Assembly: GCA_000708835.1 (NCBI GenBank)
Contig: DF237157.1
Span: 62,001-126,000 of the forward strand
Direction: 5' to 3'
Source: Klebsormidium nitens
Taxonomy: Eukaryota > Plantae > Klebsormidiophyceae
Length of the DNA: 64,000 nucleotides
Each line of letters opens with the position of its first letter. The stretch's first letter is position 1. Positions 3,601 through 47,000 of this stretch are shown here, one piece after another. The notes beneath the pieces were generated by a model. That model had not been told where the DNA came from. It saw only the letters and a list, made by a program, of their open reading frames with translations, and did not search any database. A program made the position numbers and the translations under genes.

Positions 3601-6373
3601 TTGGAAAAGGGTTCTTGGAAAGGGTCAGAAGATTGCTCAAAAATCCTACATGAAAATATGGATTAGTATGAGGGAGAATAATGTCAGATCAGCACCTGGT
3701 TGAGCTCAGTGCGGCTAAACATGACACGGGTCAGCTCCATGTAAGAAAGCATGACGAAGCATGATAAATGACCCCGTTCTGTCTCAGCAAGAGAAAGAAC
3801 AGAGCCTGCCAATCACATTTGATAGCATGCTTCTGTCCTTGTTAGCATCTCTGGATTCATATGCCCGTGCATAGAGCTGGCAAATTGGAACTTCATATGC
3901 CCGTGCATAGAGCTGGCAAATTGGAACGTCAGACAGAGTAATAAAAGCACACTCTGCACTACATGAAACATCCAGCATCATGGACTGTCCATTCCTGCTC
4001 TTTGAAACGAGCTTGCAGAGCAACACAAATCCAAAGCATCGGTCACGCAAGGTTTGCATGCGCGCTTGAGTGGGAGATCTTGCATCAGCTGGACCAGGGT
4101 GGTGTGCGAAGATTCGAAAAAGGAATACAGAGCCATTCTTGTGTCCACTTCTAGCCACATGCCTGCCTGATCTAGACCAGAAGGAACTGTCCACTAAACC
4201 CTGAGGTCTTGAGAAAGACAGAGAGGACAGAAACAAGACAAATCACCAAAAACCTTCTGAACTCCCAATCATATTAGACACCAAAGCTGTAGCTAGGCTC
4301 ACTTAGAAGCAGGAAGACGAAAGAGGAAACCCTTGGCCAACAAGCTGGCGCTTTCATGCAACTACGTGCTTGATGCATGCACCTCAGACTCCCTGCCGGA
4401 ATCAACGCTTGAAAAGCTCCACACACTTGGCGACAACCCAAAGACCTGAGGGGACATTGAAGCATCCACAGGATCACACTGCCCCTAGCCAGAAGCGAAA
4501 CAAACAACTCCAATTGGAAACCCACGAATGATAGTCTCGTAAATGATCCAGCTATTAGCACCGCATATGGTGAACAAACGTCAAGAAATGTGTAGATGTA
4601 TAAGACTATTTATGACCTTCTCTGATCACAATCTGTTAAACTGGGCTTGATCAGCATTGAATGATGTCCGTCCTCATAAATAACCACTGCATAATATGCC
4701 TCGACTACTGCCAAAATAAGGCACAACCTCTTTGGCGGCTTTATCAACACGATCGAGTGAAGGGTTTGCGTTAAATTCCTTATATCAAGAAGAGAAGCAA
4801 GTGAGACAGGATATGAACACGGAGGAGAGCAAGCGGCGCAACTCACCGCCAGCTTGGTCTCATACACCGCCCTTGACAGCACAAGCGCGTCGATCATTTG
4901 TGACGAGAAGCACGGCCCCTCATGCGGCTCCTGACACGCTGACAAACTGGTCGCCCTCAGCAGCTCTCTTGCAAACGTCGGCGCCTCGCTAAACGACCTC
5001 CTGAGTAGGTTTGATGGCCGGGGGGTGTCGGACAGGGAGTGCCTACGGCGCAGGGGGGAGGTTTGCTGCTGTAAGCCCGGATGGAGATGGGTTTTTGGAC
5101 TGTTTGGACAGCTGGCAGGGTCCTCGGGGATCTCGGACAGCTGTCGGCGCAGGAGCGGAGGGTGGGGGCTGTAACTAGCAGCGGTGTCAAAATTGGCGGT
5201 GATGGGGAGTACAGTGACCTTTGGCAGGCTTCTGATGCGGTCTAAGCACAGTTTGGGGGGGGGCGACAGCACGGCCCCATGATCAGTGGTGGCAGTATAT
5301 GACGGTGTGCTGAATGGGAACGGCTCTGTCAGTCGCGAGCTTCCTAAATTGTGGAGAGGAGCATCCTGCTTCGAATTATTGCGGCGCAGCTCTTCAAACA
5401 CTGAGGTCGTACTCCGCAGTAGGCCCCCAGCCTGCAGCGGCATTTCGATGCTATCCAATGGCCCTAATGAGCACTCAGAGCTGTCTGACGGTGTCCATAC
5501 ACCATCTGACGGCGATTGGAAAGTATCCGACAGAGTTTGAGAGGCGTCCAACCCCGCCTCCGGCCTGCGAGCATCGAGAAACCCCGCCTCCTCTACATCA
5601 TCCACCAGAAACCCGCTCAGCTGGATGCTGCGCATGGTCCTCAAAAGCTCCCTCTCTGCCCCCACCGTCTGTTTGATCGCGGGCGTCTCGCAGTGAAACC
5701 CGCTCACGGTGCGGGCAATCCTTGCCCTGTCTGCCGGTGCAACCTCCCCAAAAGGTGCACTGCTGACGAGCTCCGAGGGTTTGTCCGAGACAGCTGCCTG
5801 GAACCCCCCAAAAACTGCGCGCTGACCTTCACTGTACAATGTCCTCTCCAGCCCTCCCCAGACTGCCTCACTGGATGAGACGGGGCTTCCTGGCACAAAC
5901 CCACCCTCTCCGATCCCCCCATCTGATGATCCAAGTGACAACAGACTGGGGGTTTTCGTCCCTTCCAACCCCGGACCAACCCCACCTTTGGCATGTGTTC
6001 TTGACTGAGGTCCAGACGCCACAGTGCGTTCAACCCCTCTCAAACTGCCCCCCGAATGCGCGGAGCCTTGGACAACATTGGTCACGTTGTTGAACGCAGG
6101 TCTGTCCTGATGCTCACGAGATCCTGCCTTGAACCCCTCCCCTCCATCATTCTCACGCAGAGAAGGGTCTGCAATGGACGCCGGTTCAACAAAGACGCTG
6201 TGTGAAACCTTGACTTGCCTGGTCCCTTGACTCTGACGGCCTTGGTTTTTAGCGTCAGTTTCTGAGAGAGGGCCCATCATTCTGACGGGGTTCAGAACCC
6301 TCTGTCCACCATCTCCTTCTATCCCAACATCTGTCTGTTCAGGATACAGACTTGCACCCTCCAACCGCCATGC
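616..6373 (-). CDS. Class 3 lipase (Lipase_3, alpha/beta hydrolase) with long low-complexity N-terminal region; multi-exon, 5' end unresolved
   Basis: Phase-consistent GT-AG exons: ~6373-4847 (ends ..MIDALVLSRAVYETKLA), 3597-3391 (DMLFYMELS..HYLVACRGTDCFQDMIQ), 2337-2085 (DLQLVHKRF..AHWGFVQRA..IVLTGHSMGGAVA..ITFGCPLFAN), 1736-616 (..HILSKHDAVPR..REHEISYY..). Shows the RGT motif, the GxSxG nucleophile elbow, and candidate catalytic Asp (HDAVP) and His (EHEISYY). The start codon lies upstream of 6373 and was not located. Confidence 0.85.
2270..2870 (-). repeat. Four degenerate tandem copies (160-178 bp period) of a lipase splice acceptor plus exon start
   Basis: Minus strand: cag|GACTTGCAACTCGTCCACAAGCGC (real, 2337), cag|GATTCGCAACTCGTCCACAAGCGC (2504), cag|GACCTGCAACTCGTCCACAAGCGC (2664), cag|AATTTGCAACTCGCCAACGAGCCC (2842). 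Confidence 0.9.
3857..3927. repeat. 36-bp-period tandem duplication inside a lipase intron
   Basis: tcatatgcccgtgcatagagctggcaaattggaac occurs at 3857 and again at 3893. Confidence 0.9.
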
Positions 6374-35310: not shown

Positions 35311-38300
35311 TCAACGCTTCACCAGCAAGAACGCATCCTCTTTCAGCGCCGTGCATCCTTTCGCCACAAAATTCGGGTAATCCTTCAAAACGTCGTTTGC
35401 TGTTAGCAGTTGGGCATCGTAGCCGTTCCCAAACAGGCGATCTACCTCCTTGATGTCGATGCTATACGGGGGCCCAGACATCTCCTCCTGCAGAAACGTT
35501 CGGGAAAAAACGTGAGCATAAGCGGCCTTCTCCATCCGGTGAACAGACGAGGTGCGACTTTCTCTTTCAGGAAACAAGGACACCGAAATTCGTCCGCTTC
35601 ACAGGGTTCGACGGAGACGAGGTCTAACAGCCTTCATAATCGTTTGACGAACAAGGAAACATCCGGATGGCGAAGTGCCAAGCTCCGAGCTCTCTGATGC
35701 CATCATTCCGTGGACACTGATCAACATCTGCCGACGTCAGCAACTTCAACAGGCCACGAAACTACGAAGCTGGTAACAAAGCCCATTGGAAGGATATAAT
35801 CAAAAGAAACGTGCAAAAGCGGGTGCGACCGAGTCAAGGAGAAGTTCTCGCAATGTTTGTAGCCAATCAGATGCTCCCAGACTGACAGCTCAGACAGGCC
35901 CCCGAGCGGGATCAAAGCGAAACGCTTTCCTGTGACGGCATTCCTTTAGAGAAGATGGCGTCACAGGGACTGCACGTGCTTTTGTGAGACTCCTCATTCT
36001 CTTTACTTTCCCTTGACTTGCTTCATATTGATACAAGACGATCGAGTTCAGAACTCTCAAACCCAGAACCCAGAAACAGAATCCAGAACCCAGGACTCGA
36101 AACGAGAAAGGCGGGAATAGTCAGGACCGAAAGAGGGGACAACATTCCCACCTGGTTGTAGTTCATGCCCACTAGCAGGATGCGCGCCCCCGGCTTGAGC
36201 ACTCCGTCCAAAGCGGCGACGTACTTTCCTCTCAACGAAGGATGAACCGCCACCAATGCAGCACGGTCCAAGCACTGCCAAAACCAAGCTTCGTTGGAAA
36301 TCGAGTCAGCTTAGGTTTTAATGCAGTCATGGTGGATCATGTTGAGCAGGATCGATGTGCCAAGACAGGTGCGTATTAGAACACAAATCTGAGATGGTAT
36401 TGTCACCGACATGGTACGCTTTTGGCAAACATGGGCAAATTATGTCCGGCGTGGCGTTTTTGCAGGCACCGCGCACAAAGAGGCGATGATAGCCGCTCTT
36501 CCACCCCTTGCATTCTTTTGACTACGCCCTTTTCCGACCAGGCAGAATGCAACCCTTTGAAGGTCGCCGTTCTTTTCACCGATTGATTTCGACGTGCCAG
36601 GAAGACGCCTCACCAAGTCGAAGGTCCCCGCAGATGCTGACGTCAGCTCGAAGAAGTCGCCCCGCAAGATGCTCAGCCCGGGCCCTGCGTACACTTCGAA
36701 GCCGCCCTCGGACGTCCGGTCCAGCCTTTCGAGAGGAATGTCCGGATGCTCCTCCCTGAACTCGTCGATTGCGGTTTGGATACCTTCCACCCCGACCACA
36801 TCCAAACCCTGCACCAAAGCCACAGGGTTAGCAAGAGACATGCCTGCTTTGTTGGCTGCTTGAACCCAAGAAAGATGTGCTTTTTGATGTTTGCTAGATT
36901 ATATTAGAAGAGACTGTGAAAGGACTTTAGTGTTTTGAGGGCGTTGTGAACATGGAAGACAACTCGAGACAGGGAATGAGAAGGAAACCTAGTCAACAAG
37001 CGGGCTGAAGCTTGTAGGAAACAAGATAGAAACAGGCATTTGATGTACGCCAGCTGATATGCGGAGAATACTTCTTATCAGTGACATACATCCTTTCGAC
37101 TGCACTCAATCTACAGTTGAGCAAGACGGTAACAGCTGAAACCTATGAGCTTACACATCTGTTGCTGTGGAGCGACATGATAAAAGGTGGTGCAGCATCA
37201 AAGAGAAGCCCTGAATGGCGGGCGCCAGTGTAAGCGGCACCATTTGGCAAGTACTGAGAAATTCTTGATAGATGAACCTTGTGAGAACGATCAGGGTCTT
37301 GGACTAGCTGACGATGAAGAGCGTAACAGTTCCTAACACAGCGCTCTAAGTAGACCACCACAGCCGGAGACATGCAGTTTGTCGTCACCTATCAGATCTT
37401 GTCCTTAACAAAACCTGAGCTTTCTAGCCTCTGCACCAATCGACTCAATAATGCCTCCAATACTAAATGCCGAATGTCCAAAGTTCCGTCAAACTAAGAT
37501 GAAGTCCACTGTGTTTCTACCAAGCCTGAGCTCACATCTGGAGTCAGCTTTGCGTCTGACTGAGAGGAAGACTTTTCAAACAAAGAAGCTCAATGCGTAG
37601 AGAGCGCTTGAGCCTCTGAAAGGGATTTTGTGAGGCTGCTAATCAATGCTGCAAAAATACCCGCTTTCGATGGCAAGCGAACTGCAAGCCCACATCAAGT
37701 ACAGAAGAAATGTGAGAGAATCAAGGGGGATACCTATATTGAATATAAGTAAAGTGCTTACATAACGTAGAAATCGTTCGCATTCCATGTCTGCGCATCA
37801 GACTCAATCTGCGCTGCCCATTGCCTATTTACACCACCCCCAATCGACCAGCGTGCGACATCCTCATGTGTCAAAATTTCAAAAAGAATAAGAGAAAGAA
37901 ATTGCACTTACCTTGGAACTCAGAAATGGCATGTCTACTGTCTTCCCGCACAGCGGAACAAGCACCCGCCGGTTCTCCCCCGCTTCTTGCTCTGGCCCCA
38001 GAAACTTCTCTAGATTCTTCAGCAAGTTCGGATTCGGGTCCGCTTTATGGAACGCGATCCTCCCCGGCGCGTCCCGAGGTTTTGCCCAGCCTGCCACCCA
38101 CCGTGTGAGACGCTCTTGCGGGTCGTCAGGGCGGGAAGATTCTGATCCTGCAGCCACTGTGGGTTCTGAACTTTCCTCGTTGACATTCTTTGCGGGGTGG
38201 GAAGTTTCCGGTTGGGTCTTAGCTTCAGCGGCCATGTTGCTTCTAACCACCACCTGTCTTTGGTAACTGGAGGGGAGAGTAGCTCTGACAGAAGTGGAGT

Positions 38301-38427: not shown

Positions 38428-40022
38428 GGTTTAATAGCCAGATCAGAAAGTGAAACGGATAAATTCCATTAGCATTCAAGCTCAGAAAATTGCTTCGTTT
38501 TGAAGCTTCAATGTAGATCTACAAATATTGTAGTAGTGACGTACTGTAGTGGTCCAAAAATTGGCCACCTTTCCTCAGGGCTGCGGCTCCCCCAGCCACC
38601 ACAACTTTGCTTCGAACCAGATTTATATGAGGTGGGGCAGCGGCAGAGCGGTGCAGGGGGGCAGGCCGCAGCAGGGAGGGCTCAATGGGGGCTCAGTGGC
38701 TCGAACCTGGGTAGTATTAATAATACTGCATGGTAAACCCAAACTTCAACTGGCAGGTGCCATGTGCAAGTAGATTTGTTTTCAAGAAACCAACCCGGAA
38801 AACCCGGGTTGGATTTTGTATGCAATGCGCCCTGCGCAGTTCAGGCCTCCAGGGTAGTCGGTACTTGGCTTCACCGGCCGGCTGCACCTAGCAAGTGCGC
38901 GTGCATTACCTGCCGGCCAACCAGCTGGCGGGGTGCCTTCGAGTTCGGCACCGGCCGGGGTGCCGTTTCCGCCGGCCAGGCCCGTCGCCGGTAGTTTTCG
39001 GTGCGCCCAGTTGTCTGACACATGGCACAATGTTGATTTGCGTCTTGTTTACCTATGTCGACATACGTGAAGTTGAACAAGACGCCGCGCCAAGAGTCCA
39101 GTCAGCCGCCGCCTCAGGCTCAGGCTGTCTAGCTCCCCTTCGCTGCTTCACACAGGAAGCAAGCATTCTATTTACTGACACTGTAGCTAGGATAGGATGC
39201 AGGCACGGAATTAAGGACGGTGGCAGCGAGTGTGCGGCGAGATCGTCTTTGCGGGGATCGTCTTTTTGAAGAGAGCACCTTCTATTGCTTGCTTGCAGCT
39301 TGATTGCCAGTGGAGGTGAGGCTGGTCATCTCACACGCCTTCGCTTTTCCTGGGAAATGCTTCTTGGCGTGAGAATCCTCTCTTTGTTGACCTCTTGACC
39401 GCTCTTGATGACCATCGTAAAGTTTGCCTCGTCTAACTACCACTCATAGCTCAAAAGACTCGGTTGTAACAAAAGAGGGCTCGTCCGGCCATTGTAGGAC
39501 TTTGCGTGGACTCCGACTCTGATGTATTGTTGTCAGCTTTAGACGAGAGGGGGACTAGCAACCCACGTTGCTTTGCTTGACTAGGCATTGCTTAGGAAAA
39601 CCCACAACTGCAACAACGAAAGCTGTCTGCATGATGTGCAGATAGCGCAGATAAAAGTTGGCAAAATTTCGGGCGTCTCTTCAGGACACCAACCAGAAAC
39701 TTATCATGAATCATTACGAAGAACTGCTTGATTGAGCTAGAACCTGGATCAGCACATGAAGTTACAATGCATCAACGACGGGGACGCAAGATCTCCTCAA
39801 TGCTTCATTTGTCACGTTTTTCCTGGTTAGCCTGCCCTGTGCTTGCAGGTAGGTTCTTCTTTTATAATCTTGTTGCTGCTTTTTGCCCCAGTCACACAAA
39901 GCTGTTGCATTCCAGAATTTCTTCAAGGCCAATGCTGAATGATGATGATGCTATGATTTTGCAGGTGCCAACTTATACCAGCCTGTACCACGATTTCGGG
40001 AGGAGAAATAGCTGAGCCCACT

Positions 40023-42816
40023 ATGTTGCGCCTTGGGCTGCTGCTCTTGGTGAGCCTGTGGGGAAGCGGGTTTATAAGCGGGGTGTGCTCCTTCACTATG
40101 GAGGAGCTGACCAACATTGTTCAGGCTCCCCTCTCGAGTGTAACCTCCATAGAGAGCTCTAAGTATCTGCTCTCTGGCCCCATTCCTCCTGAACTTGGTG
40201 GCCTGACCAACCTCGTTCGGCTTAACCTTTCCAACAACTTCCTTTCAGGCCCCATTCCTCCCTGAGCTTGGTAAACTGACCCAGTTGACTCTACTCGATT
40301 TGGGTAGAAATTCACTTTCAGGCCCTATACCCCCCGAGCTCGGTGCGTTGCGGAGGCTCCAACAGCTCGGCCTCTATAATAACGACTTGTCAGGCCCCAT
40401 TCCGTCAAAGATTGGCAATCTTCTTGACCTCATATATCTTGGCCTCTTCGAAAACCAACTCTCCGGTCCAATTCCTCCTGAGCTAGGGGGTCTCCAAAAG
40501 CTTACATATCTCTACCTCTCTTCAAACCGCCTATCGGGTCCAATTCCACCTGAGCTTGCTGGTGCCCGATACCTTCAGTTCCTCGACCTTGCTTCCAACC
40601 GCCTATCTGGTACAATTCCCCCCGAGCTTGGTACTCTATATCTTCAATTGATCTACCTCTATTACAACGACCTATCTGGCCCTGTCCCCGTCGGTATTCT
40701 GCTGTCCAAGGGATAGAAGAACTTCTATTTAAACGATGGCCTTACTATACCCCCAGAGCTTGGTGACCAGGTACATCTGACAACCCTCAACTTGAGCTCT
40801 TTGTATCTTACCGGACGTATTCCGGAAACGCTTGGCAGGCTGTCCAAGTTAACCTCCCTTGACCTGGGCAATAACTGGCTTGATGGTCCGATCCCCCCGG
40901 AGCTAGGCAACCTAACCAGATTGGCCAACCTTTCATTGGAAAATAACAACCTCTCGGGCAGTATACCCCCTCCCCTTGGCAGCCTGACTGAGCTCACCTC
41001 CCTTTCATTAGGCAAGAACAAATTCTTTGGCCCCATCCCTGCCGAGCTTGGTAACCTAACCAAGCTCAAGTCCCTTTCGTTGGCTTGGAACAAGCTTTCA
41101 GGCCCCATTCCTGCCGCGCTTCGCAATCTGGTCAACCTTACTACACTTGACCTAAGCAATAATGGCCTCGTTGGCCCAATCCCTTCAGAGCTTAGCAGCC
41201 TGATCCACCTAGAAAGCCTCTCCCTCGCCTCCAACCAGATCTCGGGCCCCATCCTTCCGCAGCTCAGCAATCTTACCAACCTTACGTCCCTTGACTTGGG
41301 CAACAATAGCCTGTCGGGGCCCATTCTCCCAGAGCTCAGCAACCTGCGCAAACTCACCAAACTCGGCCTTCAGTCCAACAACCTTGTTGGAATCATCTCC
41401 CCTTCATTCAGCAGACTTACGCGTCTCAAGTATCTGTCCCTTGGAAACAACTACCTCTCGGGGTTCATCCCCTCTGAGTTCAGCAATTTGAGGGTCCTGT
41501 ATTACCTCAACTTTGAGGCGACAGCGATTTCATGCAGCTATGTGAGCTGGCCAGTAGTCTCTGTACAAGAACTGGGACTTCCCTGTTCCCCGCCACCTTG
41601 GGTGCACCAACTCGCTCTGATCAAACTCACTATAGGGTTCGGAGACGCCTCTACTCGAGTTCTCGACCTGACAACTGTGCCTGCGGGTCTCTGTAACCAA
41701 ATTAATGAGGGTGGCAGCGGTCTTGTGGAGGTTCGCAACTGCTCCGCTCTTACGAGCATCAAGTTTGGGCCAGCCTTCGACCAAACAAACGGTGGGTACT
41801 CCTGTGCGGTGGATATGAGCTGCAACATCGGAACATTGACTAGTGACACAAGGCGAGAGATTTGCCTTCACGATATCGACATTTTTACGAACACCACCTC
41901 CTTAAGCGAGTTCTGTGTAACTCCGGGGGCCACGAGGACTGTCATCACCGTCTACTCCATCCTTGGCGCCTTGGCTGCCGCGTTATGCTTTGCCTATTGG
42001 GCTATGACGCGTTTCAAGAAGGCGTTGACTCTGATTGGTGGGGGACTCGGCAAGCCGCACCCGCTAGTTACGTATGGGGTCTACCTAGGTGGCGTCGTTG
42101 GTGGAGCCGTTGTGTGGGCGGATCTTTACACCGACCTGCGCATCCTGGCTGAGGTCTGGGGGGGCTGGCCTCAGTGGGTGATCCTAGGATCCATCCTCGC
42201 ACCATACTTGGTCGGGGCCCTGTTTATTGCGGAAAGCTGTGTCGCCAGCGGTTTCGTCTTTGTACGTCCACCTCGTTTGCCGGGGTTGAGGTGGATTTGG
42301 CCCCCTCCACGTATGGACTCTGCCGCAGCCCTGCCACGGCTTCCTATGAGCCCGCTGAGGTGGGCGGTAGTGCTGGTTGTATGGCCGCTATTCCTCCCGG
42401 CGGTTGTCTTCCTCGACGTGGTGGCGTTTTTGGACAAGCTTGGCTTCCACCTTAAGCTGGGGGCACGTGTTTACGGCATGGAGCTCTGGTTCGACTCCCG
42501 CTCTTTAGTTGAGCTCGTACTGCGAACAGTGCCGCAGCTTGGGTTCCAGACGGTTGTGTTCATTGCGGGTAGCACGAAATACACGGCGCCAAATGTCTTT
42601 ATTGACAAGGGTATCTTCTTGCAATCTATTGCCCTGTCTTCGGCATCCATACTCAGCCAATTCGTGTACACGTTGTGGGGTGCCATGGTCGTCTCGGAAA
42701 ACCCTTTAGCAGTACTCTGGAGACGCATACGTTGTGTAGGCAGGTCGTGGGCGATCCAGATTCCCGTCCAACTTGATGAATATGAGGAGCAGAAGGGTGA
42801 CAACATTCACGTTTAG
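40023..42816 (+). CDS. Intronless LRR receptor-like protein (signal peptide, ~18 plant-type 24-aa LRRs, Cys-rich juxtamembrane region) fused to an XK/Xkr-like multi-pass membrane domain; carries a +1 frameshift (~40260) and an in-frame TAG (40714-40716)
   Basis: ORFs 40023..40265, 40285..40716 and 40792..42816 form one colinear LRR array (LxxLxLxxNxLSGPIPPELG). cccattcctCcctgag has one extra C relative to the other repeats. ORFs 40285 and 40792 share a frame separated only by the TAG. The C-terminal region has several TMs with ADLYTD, ELVLRTVPQLGFQ and LQSIALSSASI. Confidence 0.8.
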
Positions 42817-44088
42817 ACTCTAGTGCTGATTAGTGGAAAGCGAACCATGCACCGTCGATACCTGTGAGTTTAGTGATTTCTTCTAGGCACCAAGTGTCGC
42901 ATGCTTCCTCGTTTAGGACAGACGTCCCATGCTTTCAGTGTCATTGTTAGGTCCTAGCATTGCTAAAGCTTGACCACATGTGCACGTCACGAAATGGCAA
43001 CCAGTACGGTATAGGTTCATATGAATCGTCTCAATGTATGAATTCGATCAGCATAGACTTGAACTGTATAGGATCTGTAAGTTTGGAAAAATATGGCTTC
43101 GCGTAGACTCACATAGACGGACTCATACTTAACATTGAAGGTTACCGTACGCAGTATTTTGTATCACTGCATAAAATTTTGAGACCGTGCATGTGGGTTT
43201 CATTTATAGAAAGCTTTAGATATGGATGGTGCCCTTATAGCAGTAATATCGTACTTATGTCACTAGATATGACCCTATATTTTCTCGTTGGTATAGCACA
43301 AGCCTGATGGCTCGAACATTATTTGAATGATCATGCAATTGCATTGTATCTCCTGCGTGACATGACATGCTGTATGACGGTTTCAATTTTGTGCATGAGC
43401 TGCCATGTGCGAAATCGCCTGCGGATTAATGATGAACCTGGCCGAAAGCTCTTATAAGTGCTCGATCGCGTGCACTGAGGGCCACGATCGGGACTCGCGG
43501 TCTTCAGGACTGTCCCCTAACTCTCAATCCGATGCAAATCGCGGTTCACAGAGGGCCACGAACGTGGCCCGAGATTTGTAACCACCACACGCAATAGGTG
43601 GAATACCTAAAACGCAAAAGGCCGTTTGAGCATTGAGTAAAGTAGACTCTTGGGTGGCGGCGCACATGCAACAGTCCGGGCCGATTGCCTTTCGAAACAT
43701 TTTATGTCTATGGAGTCCCCGGACTAGCGACTGTCCTGATATGTGCTTTCTGATTGAACCATAACAAATGGATGCAACGTGCCTAATTTGAGACCAAAGA
43801 AGTGCACGGGTACATCATGCATGCACTGACCGAGTTAGTTTGGACGCTCGCAAACGTGTTCGCTTTTAGTCAGCGCGATTCAGTCCTACTGGCCGAGTCG
43901 TTTTTTCCTTGACGCAGGCTTAGTATTTGCGTGTTTGACATGTCTTTCTTTAGCACTGTAGGCACACGGTTATACCAGGGCTGCATTGGGTTATCAATCA
44001 GTGGCACCCTTGAAAAGGGAAACCCGTGGACCACATGTGAACTCTCCTCTTACGTTTTCTGGTCGCGTGCTACCGCCACTCCTTTACG

Positions 44089-47000
44089 TCACCTGAAATC
44101 AAGTGTGATGGAAGCCTTAGCCGGCTTGTGTTGACACATCTGCAAAAACGATGGTAAAGATCATGATCCTTTTTCACAGCTCATCCGTACTTCAGTACAT
44201 AAAATCAGTGAAAGAGCTCTGGACCGATCAAGGCAAACCTTTCAGAAAAGAGACTGAAAGGTAACTGATTGGCGAAGACATTTGCGGGCCTCAGATTTGT
44301 TTGTAAGGGCACAACCAGGGCAGGGAACCTCGCTGACAGAAAGTAGCTGGACTCCAGAGGTGTGCGAAATCATGAATCGAACGGCAAAGAGGGTAGATGG
44401 GAGAGGCGCAACGCAAATTGGATTGAACGGCTCACCTTCACTCCCGCCAGTTTCAACAACCGTTTCGATGCTGCGTACGCAATTTCCGGCCGGGGATCCC
44501 CCGGTCCAATATCCCGCTCGTGGCCGCCCTTGTCCGTGTAGTAGATCACTTCCGAGATGCCCGACTGTAGACGAAAACGGTCTGGATTAGTTTTTGGTTT
44601 GAGAGTCTGACTTCTTAAACCTCATTCTACTTGCAATGCCCCCAAGCGTAATGTGTTTCTGAATGCTCTCTCCCCGGCTCACATCGAAACGCAGGACACA
44701 ATTCCGTAAAAAAAATCCTGTGCGAACTTCCTTCGAGCCGCTGATCACTGCAAAGCCAGGATAAGAGGAGGCTGTGACACCTGGCACGTGTTTTATCCGT
44801 TATATTCCGGACGAATGCCCGAGCACGGGTCTACGACAGAAGCGTCAGCCGCCCAAAATGTGAAACCGCTTGCGTGGAAGTTGCTCACGAAAGCAGTGAC
44901 CCAGGTATGCACCATTCGACGAAAAGGTGGGTGGAAACGGACGAGTGGATGGCTAGTATCTCGCAGAAACAGTGTAGGGCCCTCTTTCATGAAATTTCGG
45001 CTGGAGTTGGCTCGGGATCGGCCAGGATGCTTCTGAGCGTACAGCTTGTTCAAGTTTATGGAAAGGATGGACGCTTTCAGTTACAGAAAGTACAAAGGGA
45101 ACGACGGAAAATAAAGCAGCAAACGACAACCGAATGTTCCAGAACTGAAGTTGACAAGCTCAACCAGGCTGGAAATTAGTGGAAGCCCATGTAAGCCTTC
45201 TGTGGCTTCTCTCGAGATGGAGCGGCTCATTCAAACGATAGAATATAAGGGAAAACGAAGGCTGACAGCAAGAGAGTGGACGTACCTGAATGATAAGCTT
45301 TGCGCACTCGTTGCACGGAAACATCGTGACGTACATCTTTTGGCCGGGGGCTGACGCGTGGTTCCGGTTCAGAATGGCGTTCAGCTCCGCGTGGCACACG
45401 TACCTGAGCGGAACGGAGAACAATGACGGACGTTGCGTTGATGAGAGGAGGTAACCATAGAACCGTAATTAGAAGGGAGAAGGACGCGCCATTTGCTCAA
45501 AAGACAATCGAAGTTTTAACTTCGAAGCTACGCACTGCGACAACCAAAAATAACAACATACCGGAGCTGATCCCTCCGAGGAGGAAAGGCTGACGGGGTT
45601 TTTCATGCCACTGTTCGACAGGCGTCCGGGAATTGTGCTCGTTATGCCAATCGACCCGAGTTTATCAGGAAGTGATTAGGGGGATTGGCCTTCCGTGTCA
45701 CGAGTCCACAAGAAGCTTTACAAATCTTCAGCTTTTCGAAGTTCAGTATCTCCGTTTGATCTACTCAACTTGCCAGCGCCTCTCCCATGCGTCAGCTTCT
45801 CGTAGCCATTTCGGATGATAGCCCTTTTCCTGACCGTTCAAATAAACATTGCATATGACTCTTTGCGGAAGGAGCGGCGATGTAAGCAGCTTCCGGGTCC
45901 CGCCCGAAACGATCGTGCCCTATTTGCAGAGCATAACTCTCCAGCTCGTGACTACGAATTGAAGCAAGAGCGACGCCTTACGGGTATTTTGTCTTGAGCA
46001 GGTCGCCATCTTTCGACGACTTGGCCCATGGCAGTTGGTCGTCCGAGCAGCCCCTGGGGAAACCATTGTACCCGATGCCTGTAGCGAAAAACGGAAGACT
46101 CTCGGTTGATCACTTAGGTTTCATGACTTGCAAAATCTGAGGTGTTAAATACGACGAGCAAGTTAGCACGAGCTGACGTCATCGGTCCCCAAAGCAGCGC
46201 CCCGGAAGCCGTTGTAAGCGATCCCTGCAGCAGGAACAAAAGCTGCTCGCTTACGTGCTTGTGAGACTGGAAGGTTTTGGGGGGAAAAGCAGGGGGCTTA
46301 ATAGCAGTGACGTCATGACTGTCGCAAGCAAGAGCGCACGTCGAGTTTGAGAACGGCAAGCGCTCCATAGACCCTACGACATTCCCTTACGTCTTCGCTC
46401 AGAAAGGGACGTGTAGAGAGCGTAACTTGAGCTGAGGGGACATTCGCTGAGAGAGTTGCAAGCACAGTTGAGGTCCGAAACGGATTCAAGAACGGACATG
46501 CTGGTCGAATATAATTCACACAATGTGGGCACAACTTTCCCCCTAAAATCTTAAGTAATCTTCTTCGAGTGTGCAGTTTTCTCGCTACAATATCTGGCTG
46601 CATGGTAAACTCTCTGCGTCCCGCTTTCTCCTCGAAATGTGGTGTCCAAAATGCAGAACCTCTCGAAAGTCTGTTCGAAGTACTAAATTGGCCCAACTCG
46701 CCGTCAGCCCCATCGTTCGTGGTCAGATTTATCAACTTAAAATGCTCAGAACTAACAGTCAGTCCGCGCGAAACAGATGTCCAGTAGGTACGGCATCGGA
46801 TGGCCTAGCGTTCTTTAAGGTTTGCAGGCTTAAACCTTGGTAGAGCTTCGGAATTATGCATAAGACGTCAAGAAGCTGAGATTAATAGCTCGGATCTGGA
46901 ACTTACCCAGGATGATGCGCTCCTGGCTTACGATGCACGCTCCAACCTGGGAAGAAAAAAACGAGCTGGGTTCAAAGCAGTTACCAAAGTCTCCAATTAC

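Follow-up and report, generated by a model that had tools for sequence, protein, structure and literature searches.

A transcribed, broken-frame locus of Klebsormidium nitens and its family of LRR receptor-like proteins with an XK-like half module

Organization of the locus

The window analysed here is a stretch of 64,000 nucleotides from the forward strand of the Klebsormidium nitens scaffold DF237157.1 (assembly GCA_000708835.1; positions 62,001 to 126,000), and all positions below are counted from its first letter. The locus at 40023-42816 corresponds to the K. nitens gene KFL_002080190 with a 100% match, the C-terminal 290 residues of its long open reading frame (ORF) being 100% identical to the hypothetical protein of that name (734 aa). 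The features of the locus are collected in Table 1.

Table 1. Features of the KFL_002080190 locus, in window positions
Feature	Position	Strand	Basis
5' exon of the transcript (exon start lies further upstream)	39200..39313	+	joint 39313->39963 in RNA contigs of 4 runs
Real 5' intron, GT..AG, 649 nt	39314..39962	+	joint in 4/4 runs from 4 studies
Second exon, the unbroken transcript body; 3' ends at 43130-43190	39963..43190	+	single contigs, 0 other letters, 0 gaps
ORF piece 1: signal peptide (40023-40091), N-cap, 2 LRRs, TGA end	40023..40265	+	
Public-model 676-nt "intron" (LRR-coding, spans both defects)	40163..40838	+	public protein vs DNA; no joint in 4 runs
Site of 1-nt insertion, frame shift within a GPIPP-ELG unit	40261..40263	+	sequence reading; RNA contigs identical
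LRR piece 2, about 6 units	40267..40713	+	Pfam LRR_1 1.9e-24
In-frame TAG stop	40714..40716	+	sequence reading; RNA contigs identical
LRR piece 3, about 11 units	40717..41511	+	Pfam LRR_1 5.9e-30, LRR_8 9.8e-24; repeat spacing
Juxtamembrane spacer, 9 Cys	41512..41940	+	no Pfam match
Anchor transmembrane helix, then K/R-rich cytosolic loop	41941..42009	+	AF2 helix 2-31; direct reading
XK/XKR N-terminal-repeat-like core (model residues 41-251)	42061..42693	+	VIA-align
ADLYTD (D61, D65)	42118..42135	+	hXKR8 D26/D30 equivalents by alignment offset; PMC8500837
ELVLRTVPQLGFQ (E191, R195, P198, Q199, Q203)	42511..42549	+	E191 = E137 equivalent, R195 = E141 position
Short cytosolic tail, basic then acidic, and stop codon	42694..42816	+	

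The original prediction described a receptor with a signal peptide, about 18 plant-type extracellular leucine-rich repeats (LRRs), a Cys-rich spacer, a transmembrane helix and a polytopic domain, and this architecture was largely recovered. The ATG at 40023 opens a signal-peptide-like start (MLRLGLLLLVSLWGSGFISGVCS), and about 19 plant-type LRR units of 24 residues, with GPIPPELG spacing, could be counted when the sequence was read in three pieces, which Pfam assigns to LRR_1 and LRR_8. The spacer of approximately 140 residues shares a GLPCSPPP motif with the sister copy on contig L002 and is followed by the anchor helix and the polytopic C-terminal domain. As predicted, a Pfam scan of the locus pieces found no kinase or TIR domain, and Pkinase had no match in any locus piece or any paralog scanned. 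Two of the motifs that had been pointed out, ADLYTD and ELVLRTVPQLGFQ, lie exactly at the predicted coordinates, and the third, LQSIALSSASI, was located at 42619-42651.

In the flanks (L005; about 37055-38235 and from 42089 onwards), a TPMT-family methyltransferase gene lies upstream and a dCMP/cytidine deaminase-like gene lies downstream, both on the minus strand, and a separate transcript was observed at 43831-44141. An antisense ORF at 40725-41360 was rejected as a gene, being a by-product of the LRR repeat.

Frame interruptions and the transcript

The stretch 40023-42816 is not one open frame, and the two breaks in it had gone unmentioned. A 1-nt insertion near 40262, within a GPIPP-ELG unit, brings the first ORF to a stop at a TGA (40263-40265); the second piece (40285-40716) is closed by the in-frame TAG, and the third reaches 42816. 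RNA contigs from four runs of four different studies were compared with the region 39200-44200. All four contig sets contain the 39313/39963 GT..AG joint, and the contigs therefore represent RNA. In each of the four runs, one contig spans 39963 to 43130-43190 with no differing letters, gaps or joints, and both the frameshift and the TAG are unchanged in the RNA contigs of the four studies.

The public protein omits 40163-40838 as a GT..AG intron of 676 nt, a segment that is in-register LRR coding sequence with both defects inside. Because the RNA contigs are continuous over 39963 to about 43190, this "intron" is retained in the main transcript, which thus keeps both the frameshift and the TAG, so that only 80 residues are encodable from the ATG at 40023. 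The full fusion of LRRs and an XK-like domain, which had been attributed to this locus, is therefore not encoded by the main transcript of KFL_002080190.

It could be argued that the gene is intact as annotated, and that splicing of 40163-40838 yields a 734-residue protein with about 10 LRRs and the half-XK domain described below. The segment is bounded by GT..AG, and its length equals 1 mod 3, which exactly offsets the 1-nt insertion while the TAG is also removed; in addition, the transcript is well represented in RNA assemblies, whose contigs drop rare variants and can miss a rare isoform lacking 40163-40838. Against this, one contig runs over both proposed splice sites with no joint in all four runs from four studies, in each of which the upstream intron is spliced, and the segment itself is LRR coding sequence, as would be expected if a gene predictor had bridged the defects. 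Moreover, this copy departs from the consensus at 7 of the 33 family columns that are conserved at 80% or more (the sister copy P0002 departs at none), and its terminal branch measures 0.87 versus 0.64 in P0002. An intact gene of this kind is considered very improbable, and the public gene model of KFL_002080190 is probably wrong. Programmed frameshifting or readthrough was also set aside, since two different defects would need to be bypassed and neither had support.

Two further observations concern the 5' end. In the public model, the start codon lies in another exon farther upstream (window 39055-39313), with an acceptor near 39283 (cag|ctt), and the RNA contigs cross this site uninterrupted (39200-39313), which makes the 5' end of the public model doubtful as well. 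A low-depth contig (depth 3.7, run X1) at 39549-39992 includes some of the 5' intron and continues past the acceptor, resembling an unspliced precursor.

The locus is most likely a transcribed, decaying paralog, whose main mRNA would yield no more than a secreted stub of 80 residues, barring the existence of a rare spliced isoform. It is less important in itself than the family to which it belongs, and serves as an example of a public model that hides two defects in an unsupported intron.

Distribution and variation of the family

A phmmer search of 1.84 billion representatives with the 291-residue C-terminal part as the query revealed a family of 49 cluster representatives, 30 of them with E<1e-10. 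All organism-named matches belong to K. nitens (at least 9 genes) or to a K. subtile transcriptome, and the others come from JGI or Logan contigs. The original prediction had been staked on the recurrence of the fusion in paralogs, and the fusion does recur: LRRs were found N-terminal of the domain in every long member scanned, and at least 17 cluster representatives carry both parts. Among these, P0003 is a K. subtile Trinity ORF with the fusion of LRRs and the half-XK domain, and P0011 (GAQ78274) combines a signal peptide with an uninterrupted 2-kb LRR exon. A full-text literature search (Klebsormidium XK-related; XK-related and LRR in algae; Xkr evolution in plants/protists) found no description of such a fusion.

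Several members differ in gene structure or domain composition. At the intact GAQ78274 locus (L004:6938-7410), an intron splits the half-XK domain just after the DLxTD helix, and the KFL_002080190 copy has this domain in a single exon. The closest relative of the latter, the sister copy P0002 from the JGI metagenome 3300060284 (L002:4200-4240; the contig was found in two samples), also has a 1-nt insertion within an LRR unit (LTSLTF-g-LNLSY), at another site, which separates the ectodomain ORF 3659-4516 from the ORF 4227-6260 that encodes the remaining LRRs, the spacer and the domain. An LRR frameshift is thus present in both loci whose LRR region was read base by base, a hint of rapid birth and death among the family members. 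In P0018 (K. nitens KFL_010600020, 290 aa), an N-terminally cut half-XK domain (residues 1-211) is followed by Sel1 repeats (PF08238, 5e-18), a different fusion partner on the cytosolic side. P0047 (JGI, 997 aa) has LRRs and, at residues 390-472, weakly matches the first helices of the domain; approximately 330 further C-terminal residues come after this match.

Relationship of the C-terminal domain to XK/XKR proteins

An AlphaFold model of the C-terminal domain was built from a 22-sequence family alignment (pLDDT 84.9, pTM 0.81); a model from the single sequence was discarded (pLDDT 40.7). The helices at model residues 41-71, 77-102, 138-166, 181-209 and 223-251 correspond to TM1, TM2, the inserted helix IH1, TM3 and TM4, respectively. 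XKR9 is built from two related repeats, in each of which four transmembrane helices are accompanied by a partly inserted helix (PMC8298096). According to the model, the domain comprises one such repeat, the N-terminal one (ND), behind an extra anchor helix, in agreement with the earlier view that about half of the XK helices are present. The second XKR repeat is absent from the model, which thus does not have the two-repeat fold.

When the model was compared with all 48,161 PDB representatives by VIA-align, the first three ranks were occupied by XKR9 (7p16_A, Z 11.2, rmsd 3.8, 152 residues aligned, chain 2-190), XKR4 (9boj_B, Z 10.4) and XKR8 (8xej_X, Z 8.5, chain 7-180), with 14-18% identity in the XKR rows versus 10% or less in lower rows. 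VIA-align of Foldseek's top 1000 placed four XKR entries at Z 11.5, 11.1, 10.4 and 8.5, the next row having a Z of 6.9. The matched regions are the ND in both XKR8 (residues 7-201) and XKR9 (residues 2-190). The tool warns that Z below about 13 is possible between unrelated helical bundles, and the Z values alone are therefore no proof. Foldseek itself gave nothing significant against the PDB (E above 0.08), the XKR8 row having E 0.52 and the best TM-score (0.30).

Independent support came from sequence comparison. With members scanned singly, PF09815 was the sole Pfam family matched by more than one of them, namely P0026 (E 2.9e-4, 20.4 bits, HMM positions 3-174 of 337) and P0033 (E 2.6e-3, 17.2 bits, HMM positions 4-190). 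These matches map to model residues 51-235 and 52-251, respectively, so that register and N-terminal half both agree with the structural match. The two scores are the best among the scanned members, none of which reached the gathering score of 24.8 bits, and the protein of KFL_002080190 itself had no match to PF09815 at E up to 10. Searches of PDB sequences with the family profile and the motif block (hmmsearch) and with the two most XK-like members (phmmer) retrieved no XKR chain. A homologue search with the P0026 domain recovered the query alone, with no bridge to canonical XK proteins or other taxa. In a feature search of the ESM Atlas, the nearest neighbour clusters included a single Pfam family, XK-related. 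The XK-like character proposed for the domain is accordingly borne out by the XKR proteins at ranks 1-3 of 48,161 and by two sub-threshold PF09815 matches, and falls short of the curated Pfam threshold.

The conserved residues were then placed on the XKR fold. The family consensus reads DLxTD ... WGAWPxWV ... RxLxELLL[R/E]SxPQAxFQT ... LGSSRATRIYID, in which D61 is kept in 13 and D65 in 14 of 18 members. Among 22 members, position 191 is E or D in 19, R187 and Q199 are each present in 20, and P198 and Q203 are invariant, whereas position 195 is divided between R (11) and E (10). The spacing E191-x3-R195-x2-P198-Q199 equals what we take to be the spacing in XKR8, E137-x3-E141-x2-P-Q. The XKR family has as a hallmark a cluster of acidic residues in its N-terminal repeat, on TM1 and TM3 (PMC8298096), and scrambling by Xkr8 requires D26, D30, K/R134, E137, E141 and R183 (PMC8500837). 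By range offsets rather than by residue-by-residue alignment (7dce alignment, model 42 versus chain 7), D61 and D65 coincide with D26 and D30. The KFL_002080190 copy retains D61, D65 and E191 and has R195 at the E141 position, these equivalences being drawn from alignment offsets and motif spacing. The Arg that had been noted in place of the second motif Glu is present in this copy and confined to some members, Glu being found at this position in 10 of 22.

The loops after the anchor helix, TM2 and TM4 are rich in K/R. Under the positive-inside rule, they suggest an ectodomain outside the cell, an anchor helix, and an XK-like unit with a cytosolic N-terminus; the cytosolic tail comprises approximately 40 residues.

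Some of these results would also fit a lineage-specific helical membrane bundle that is unrelated to XK and resembles it by convergence or chance: Foldseek gave no significant match and HMMER no XKR chain, a Z of about 11 is within the range of unrelated helical bundles according to the tool, and the best shape matches in the ESM Atlas are unnamed clusters. Against this, the three XKR cluster representatives occupy the top three ranks among 48,161 chains and have the highest identities, and two divergent members independently match PF09815 with a common register and within one and the same half of the profile. Judged by alignment offsets and motif spacing, the charged and P-Q residues that are conserved lie at XKR hallmark positions, and the inferred topology agrees with that of the XKR ND. 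An unrelated bundle is thus regarded as quite unlikely, and the resemblance of the modelled C-terminal domain to an N-terminal XK repeat holds at the fold level. Taken together, the locus is probably a transcribed, broken-frame copy from a family so far found only in Klebsormidium, which consists of LRR receptor-like proteins with a module remotely homologous to the XK/XKR ND.

Possible mechanism and roles

XK/Xkr proteins are known to act as scramblases in animal apoptosis and to partner VPS13; XK pairs with VPS13A, a bridge-like lipid transfer protein. Surface receptors of the plant lineage are known to signal via kinases or kinase partners. The plan of the family comprises a signal peptide, a plant-type LRR ectodomain, a Cys-containing spacer, one anchor helix and a polytopic module of approximately 210 residues. 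In intact members, the anchor helix would leave the XK-like module with a cytosolic N-terminus, like that of XKR proteins. Since one repeat is half of an XKR protein, an XKR-like unit would probably require the pairing of two receptors. Ligand binding to the LRRs might drive such pairing and thereby lead to lipid scrambling or to some other perturbation of the membrane. A role of the family as a scramblase or channel, in immunity or in cell death may be proposed by analogy only. The specific idea that intact members are ligand-gated membrane effectors, in which LRR-driven pairing of half-XK modules directly scrambles lipids or leaks ions, is a speculative one and appears unlikely at present.

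A somewhat better chance, still below even, is given to the possibility that the domain is XK-like and does not scramble, serving instead as a membrane scaffold (e.g., one that partners a bridge-like lipid transfer protein), a module for trafficking or anchoring, or an ion-binding site. No scrambling was seen with purified XKR9 in vitro, and the acidic cluster of XKR9 was likened to a cation site (PMC8298096); this result, together with the Arg at the E141 position in half of the family, makes a scaffold or partner role a serious rival, and the presence of only half of an XKR protein is also in its favor. On the other hand, the retained residues correspond, by alignment offsets and motif spacing, to those that Xkr8 scrambling requires (PMC8500837), and nothing was found in favor of any specific alternative partner.

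If the ligand-gated effector reading were true, the family would represent a kinase-free class of receptor output in an alga close to the base of the lineage of land plants, and the two-repeat XK fold would have arisen by duplication of such a half unit. A recurrent, expressed fusion of an LRR ectodomain and one XK repeat would mean that the XK fold reaches into streptophyte algae and would suggest a direct route from ligand to membrane, and the family would offer a natural single-repeat form for studying the origin of the XK fold.

Comparison with known systems

The family combines an LRR receptor-like protein with an XK fold, and both parts are of known kinds. With the XK-related proteins (PF09815; XKR8, XKR9, XKR4, XK and CED-8), it has in common the fold of the N-terminal repeat (TM1, TM2, a partly inserted helix, TM3 and TM4) and, by its inferred topology, the cytosolic N-terminus of this repeat. 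Judged by alignment offsets and motif spacing, the acidic pair D-x-x-T-D on TM1 and the motif E-x-x-x-[E/R]-S-x-P-Q-x-x-x-Q on TM3 appear to be retained as well. In contrast to these proteins, the Klebsormidium domain has one of the two repeats, lies behind a large LRR ectodomain and an additional anchor helix, shows no evident caspase site or phospho-regulated tail, and has sequence scores under the Pfam threshold. Whereas the named members come from streptophyte algae (Klebsormidium), the XKR proteins described in PMC8500837 and PMC8298096 are all from animals.

The best shape and feature neighbours in the ESM Atlas are eukaryotic clusters of 194-270 residues (Bacillariophyta (diatoms), Mucoromycota and Foraminifera), the shape match to Bacillariophyta having TM 0.49/0.69 over 176 residues and the feature score for these neighbours being 0.89. 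These clusters were compared by shape and features rather than by sequence; they have a single-repeat size like that of the half-XK domain, with no LRRs reported, and may be free-standing single-repeat XK-like proteins.

The N-terminal part resembles the plant LRR-RLP and LRR-RLK receptors, for example those with FLS2-type ectodomains, with which it shares a signal peptide, plant-specific LRRs of 24 residues (LxxLxLxxNxLSGxIPxxLG), a juxtamembrane spacer and a single helix, and two of the paralogs have been automatically named "FLS2". Unlike LRR-RLKs, the Klebsormidium receptors have no kinase. They also differ from LRR-RLPs, in which a single-pass transmembrane helix ends in a short tail: the KFL_002080190 ORF is interrupted twice, and the anchor helix continues into a polytopic module of four transmembrane helices.
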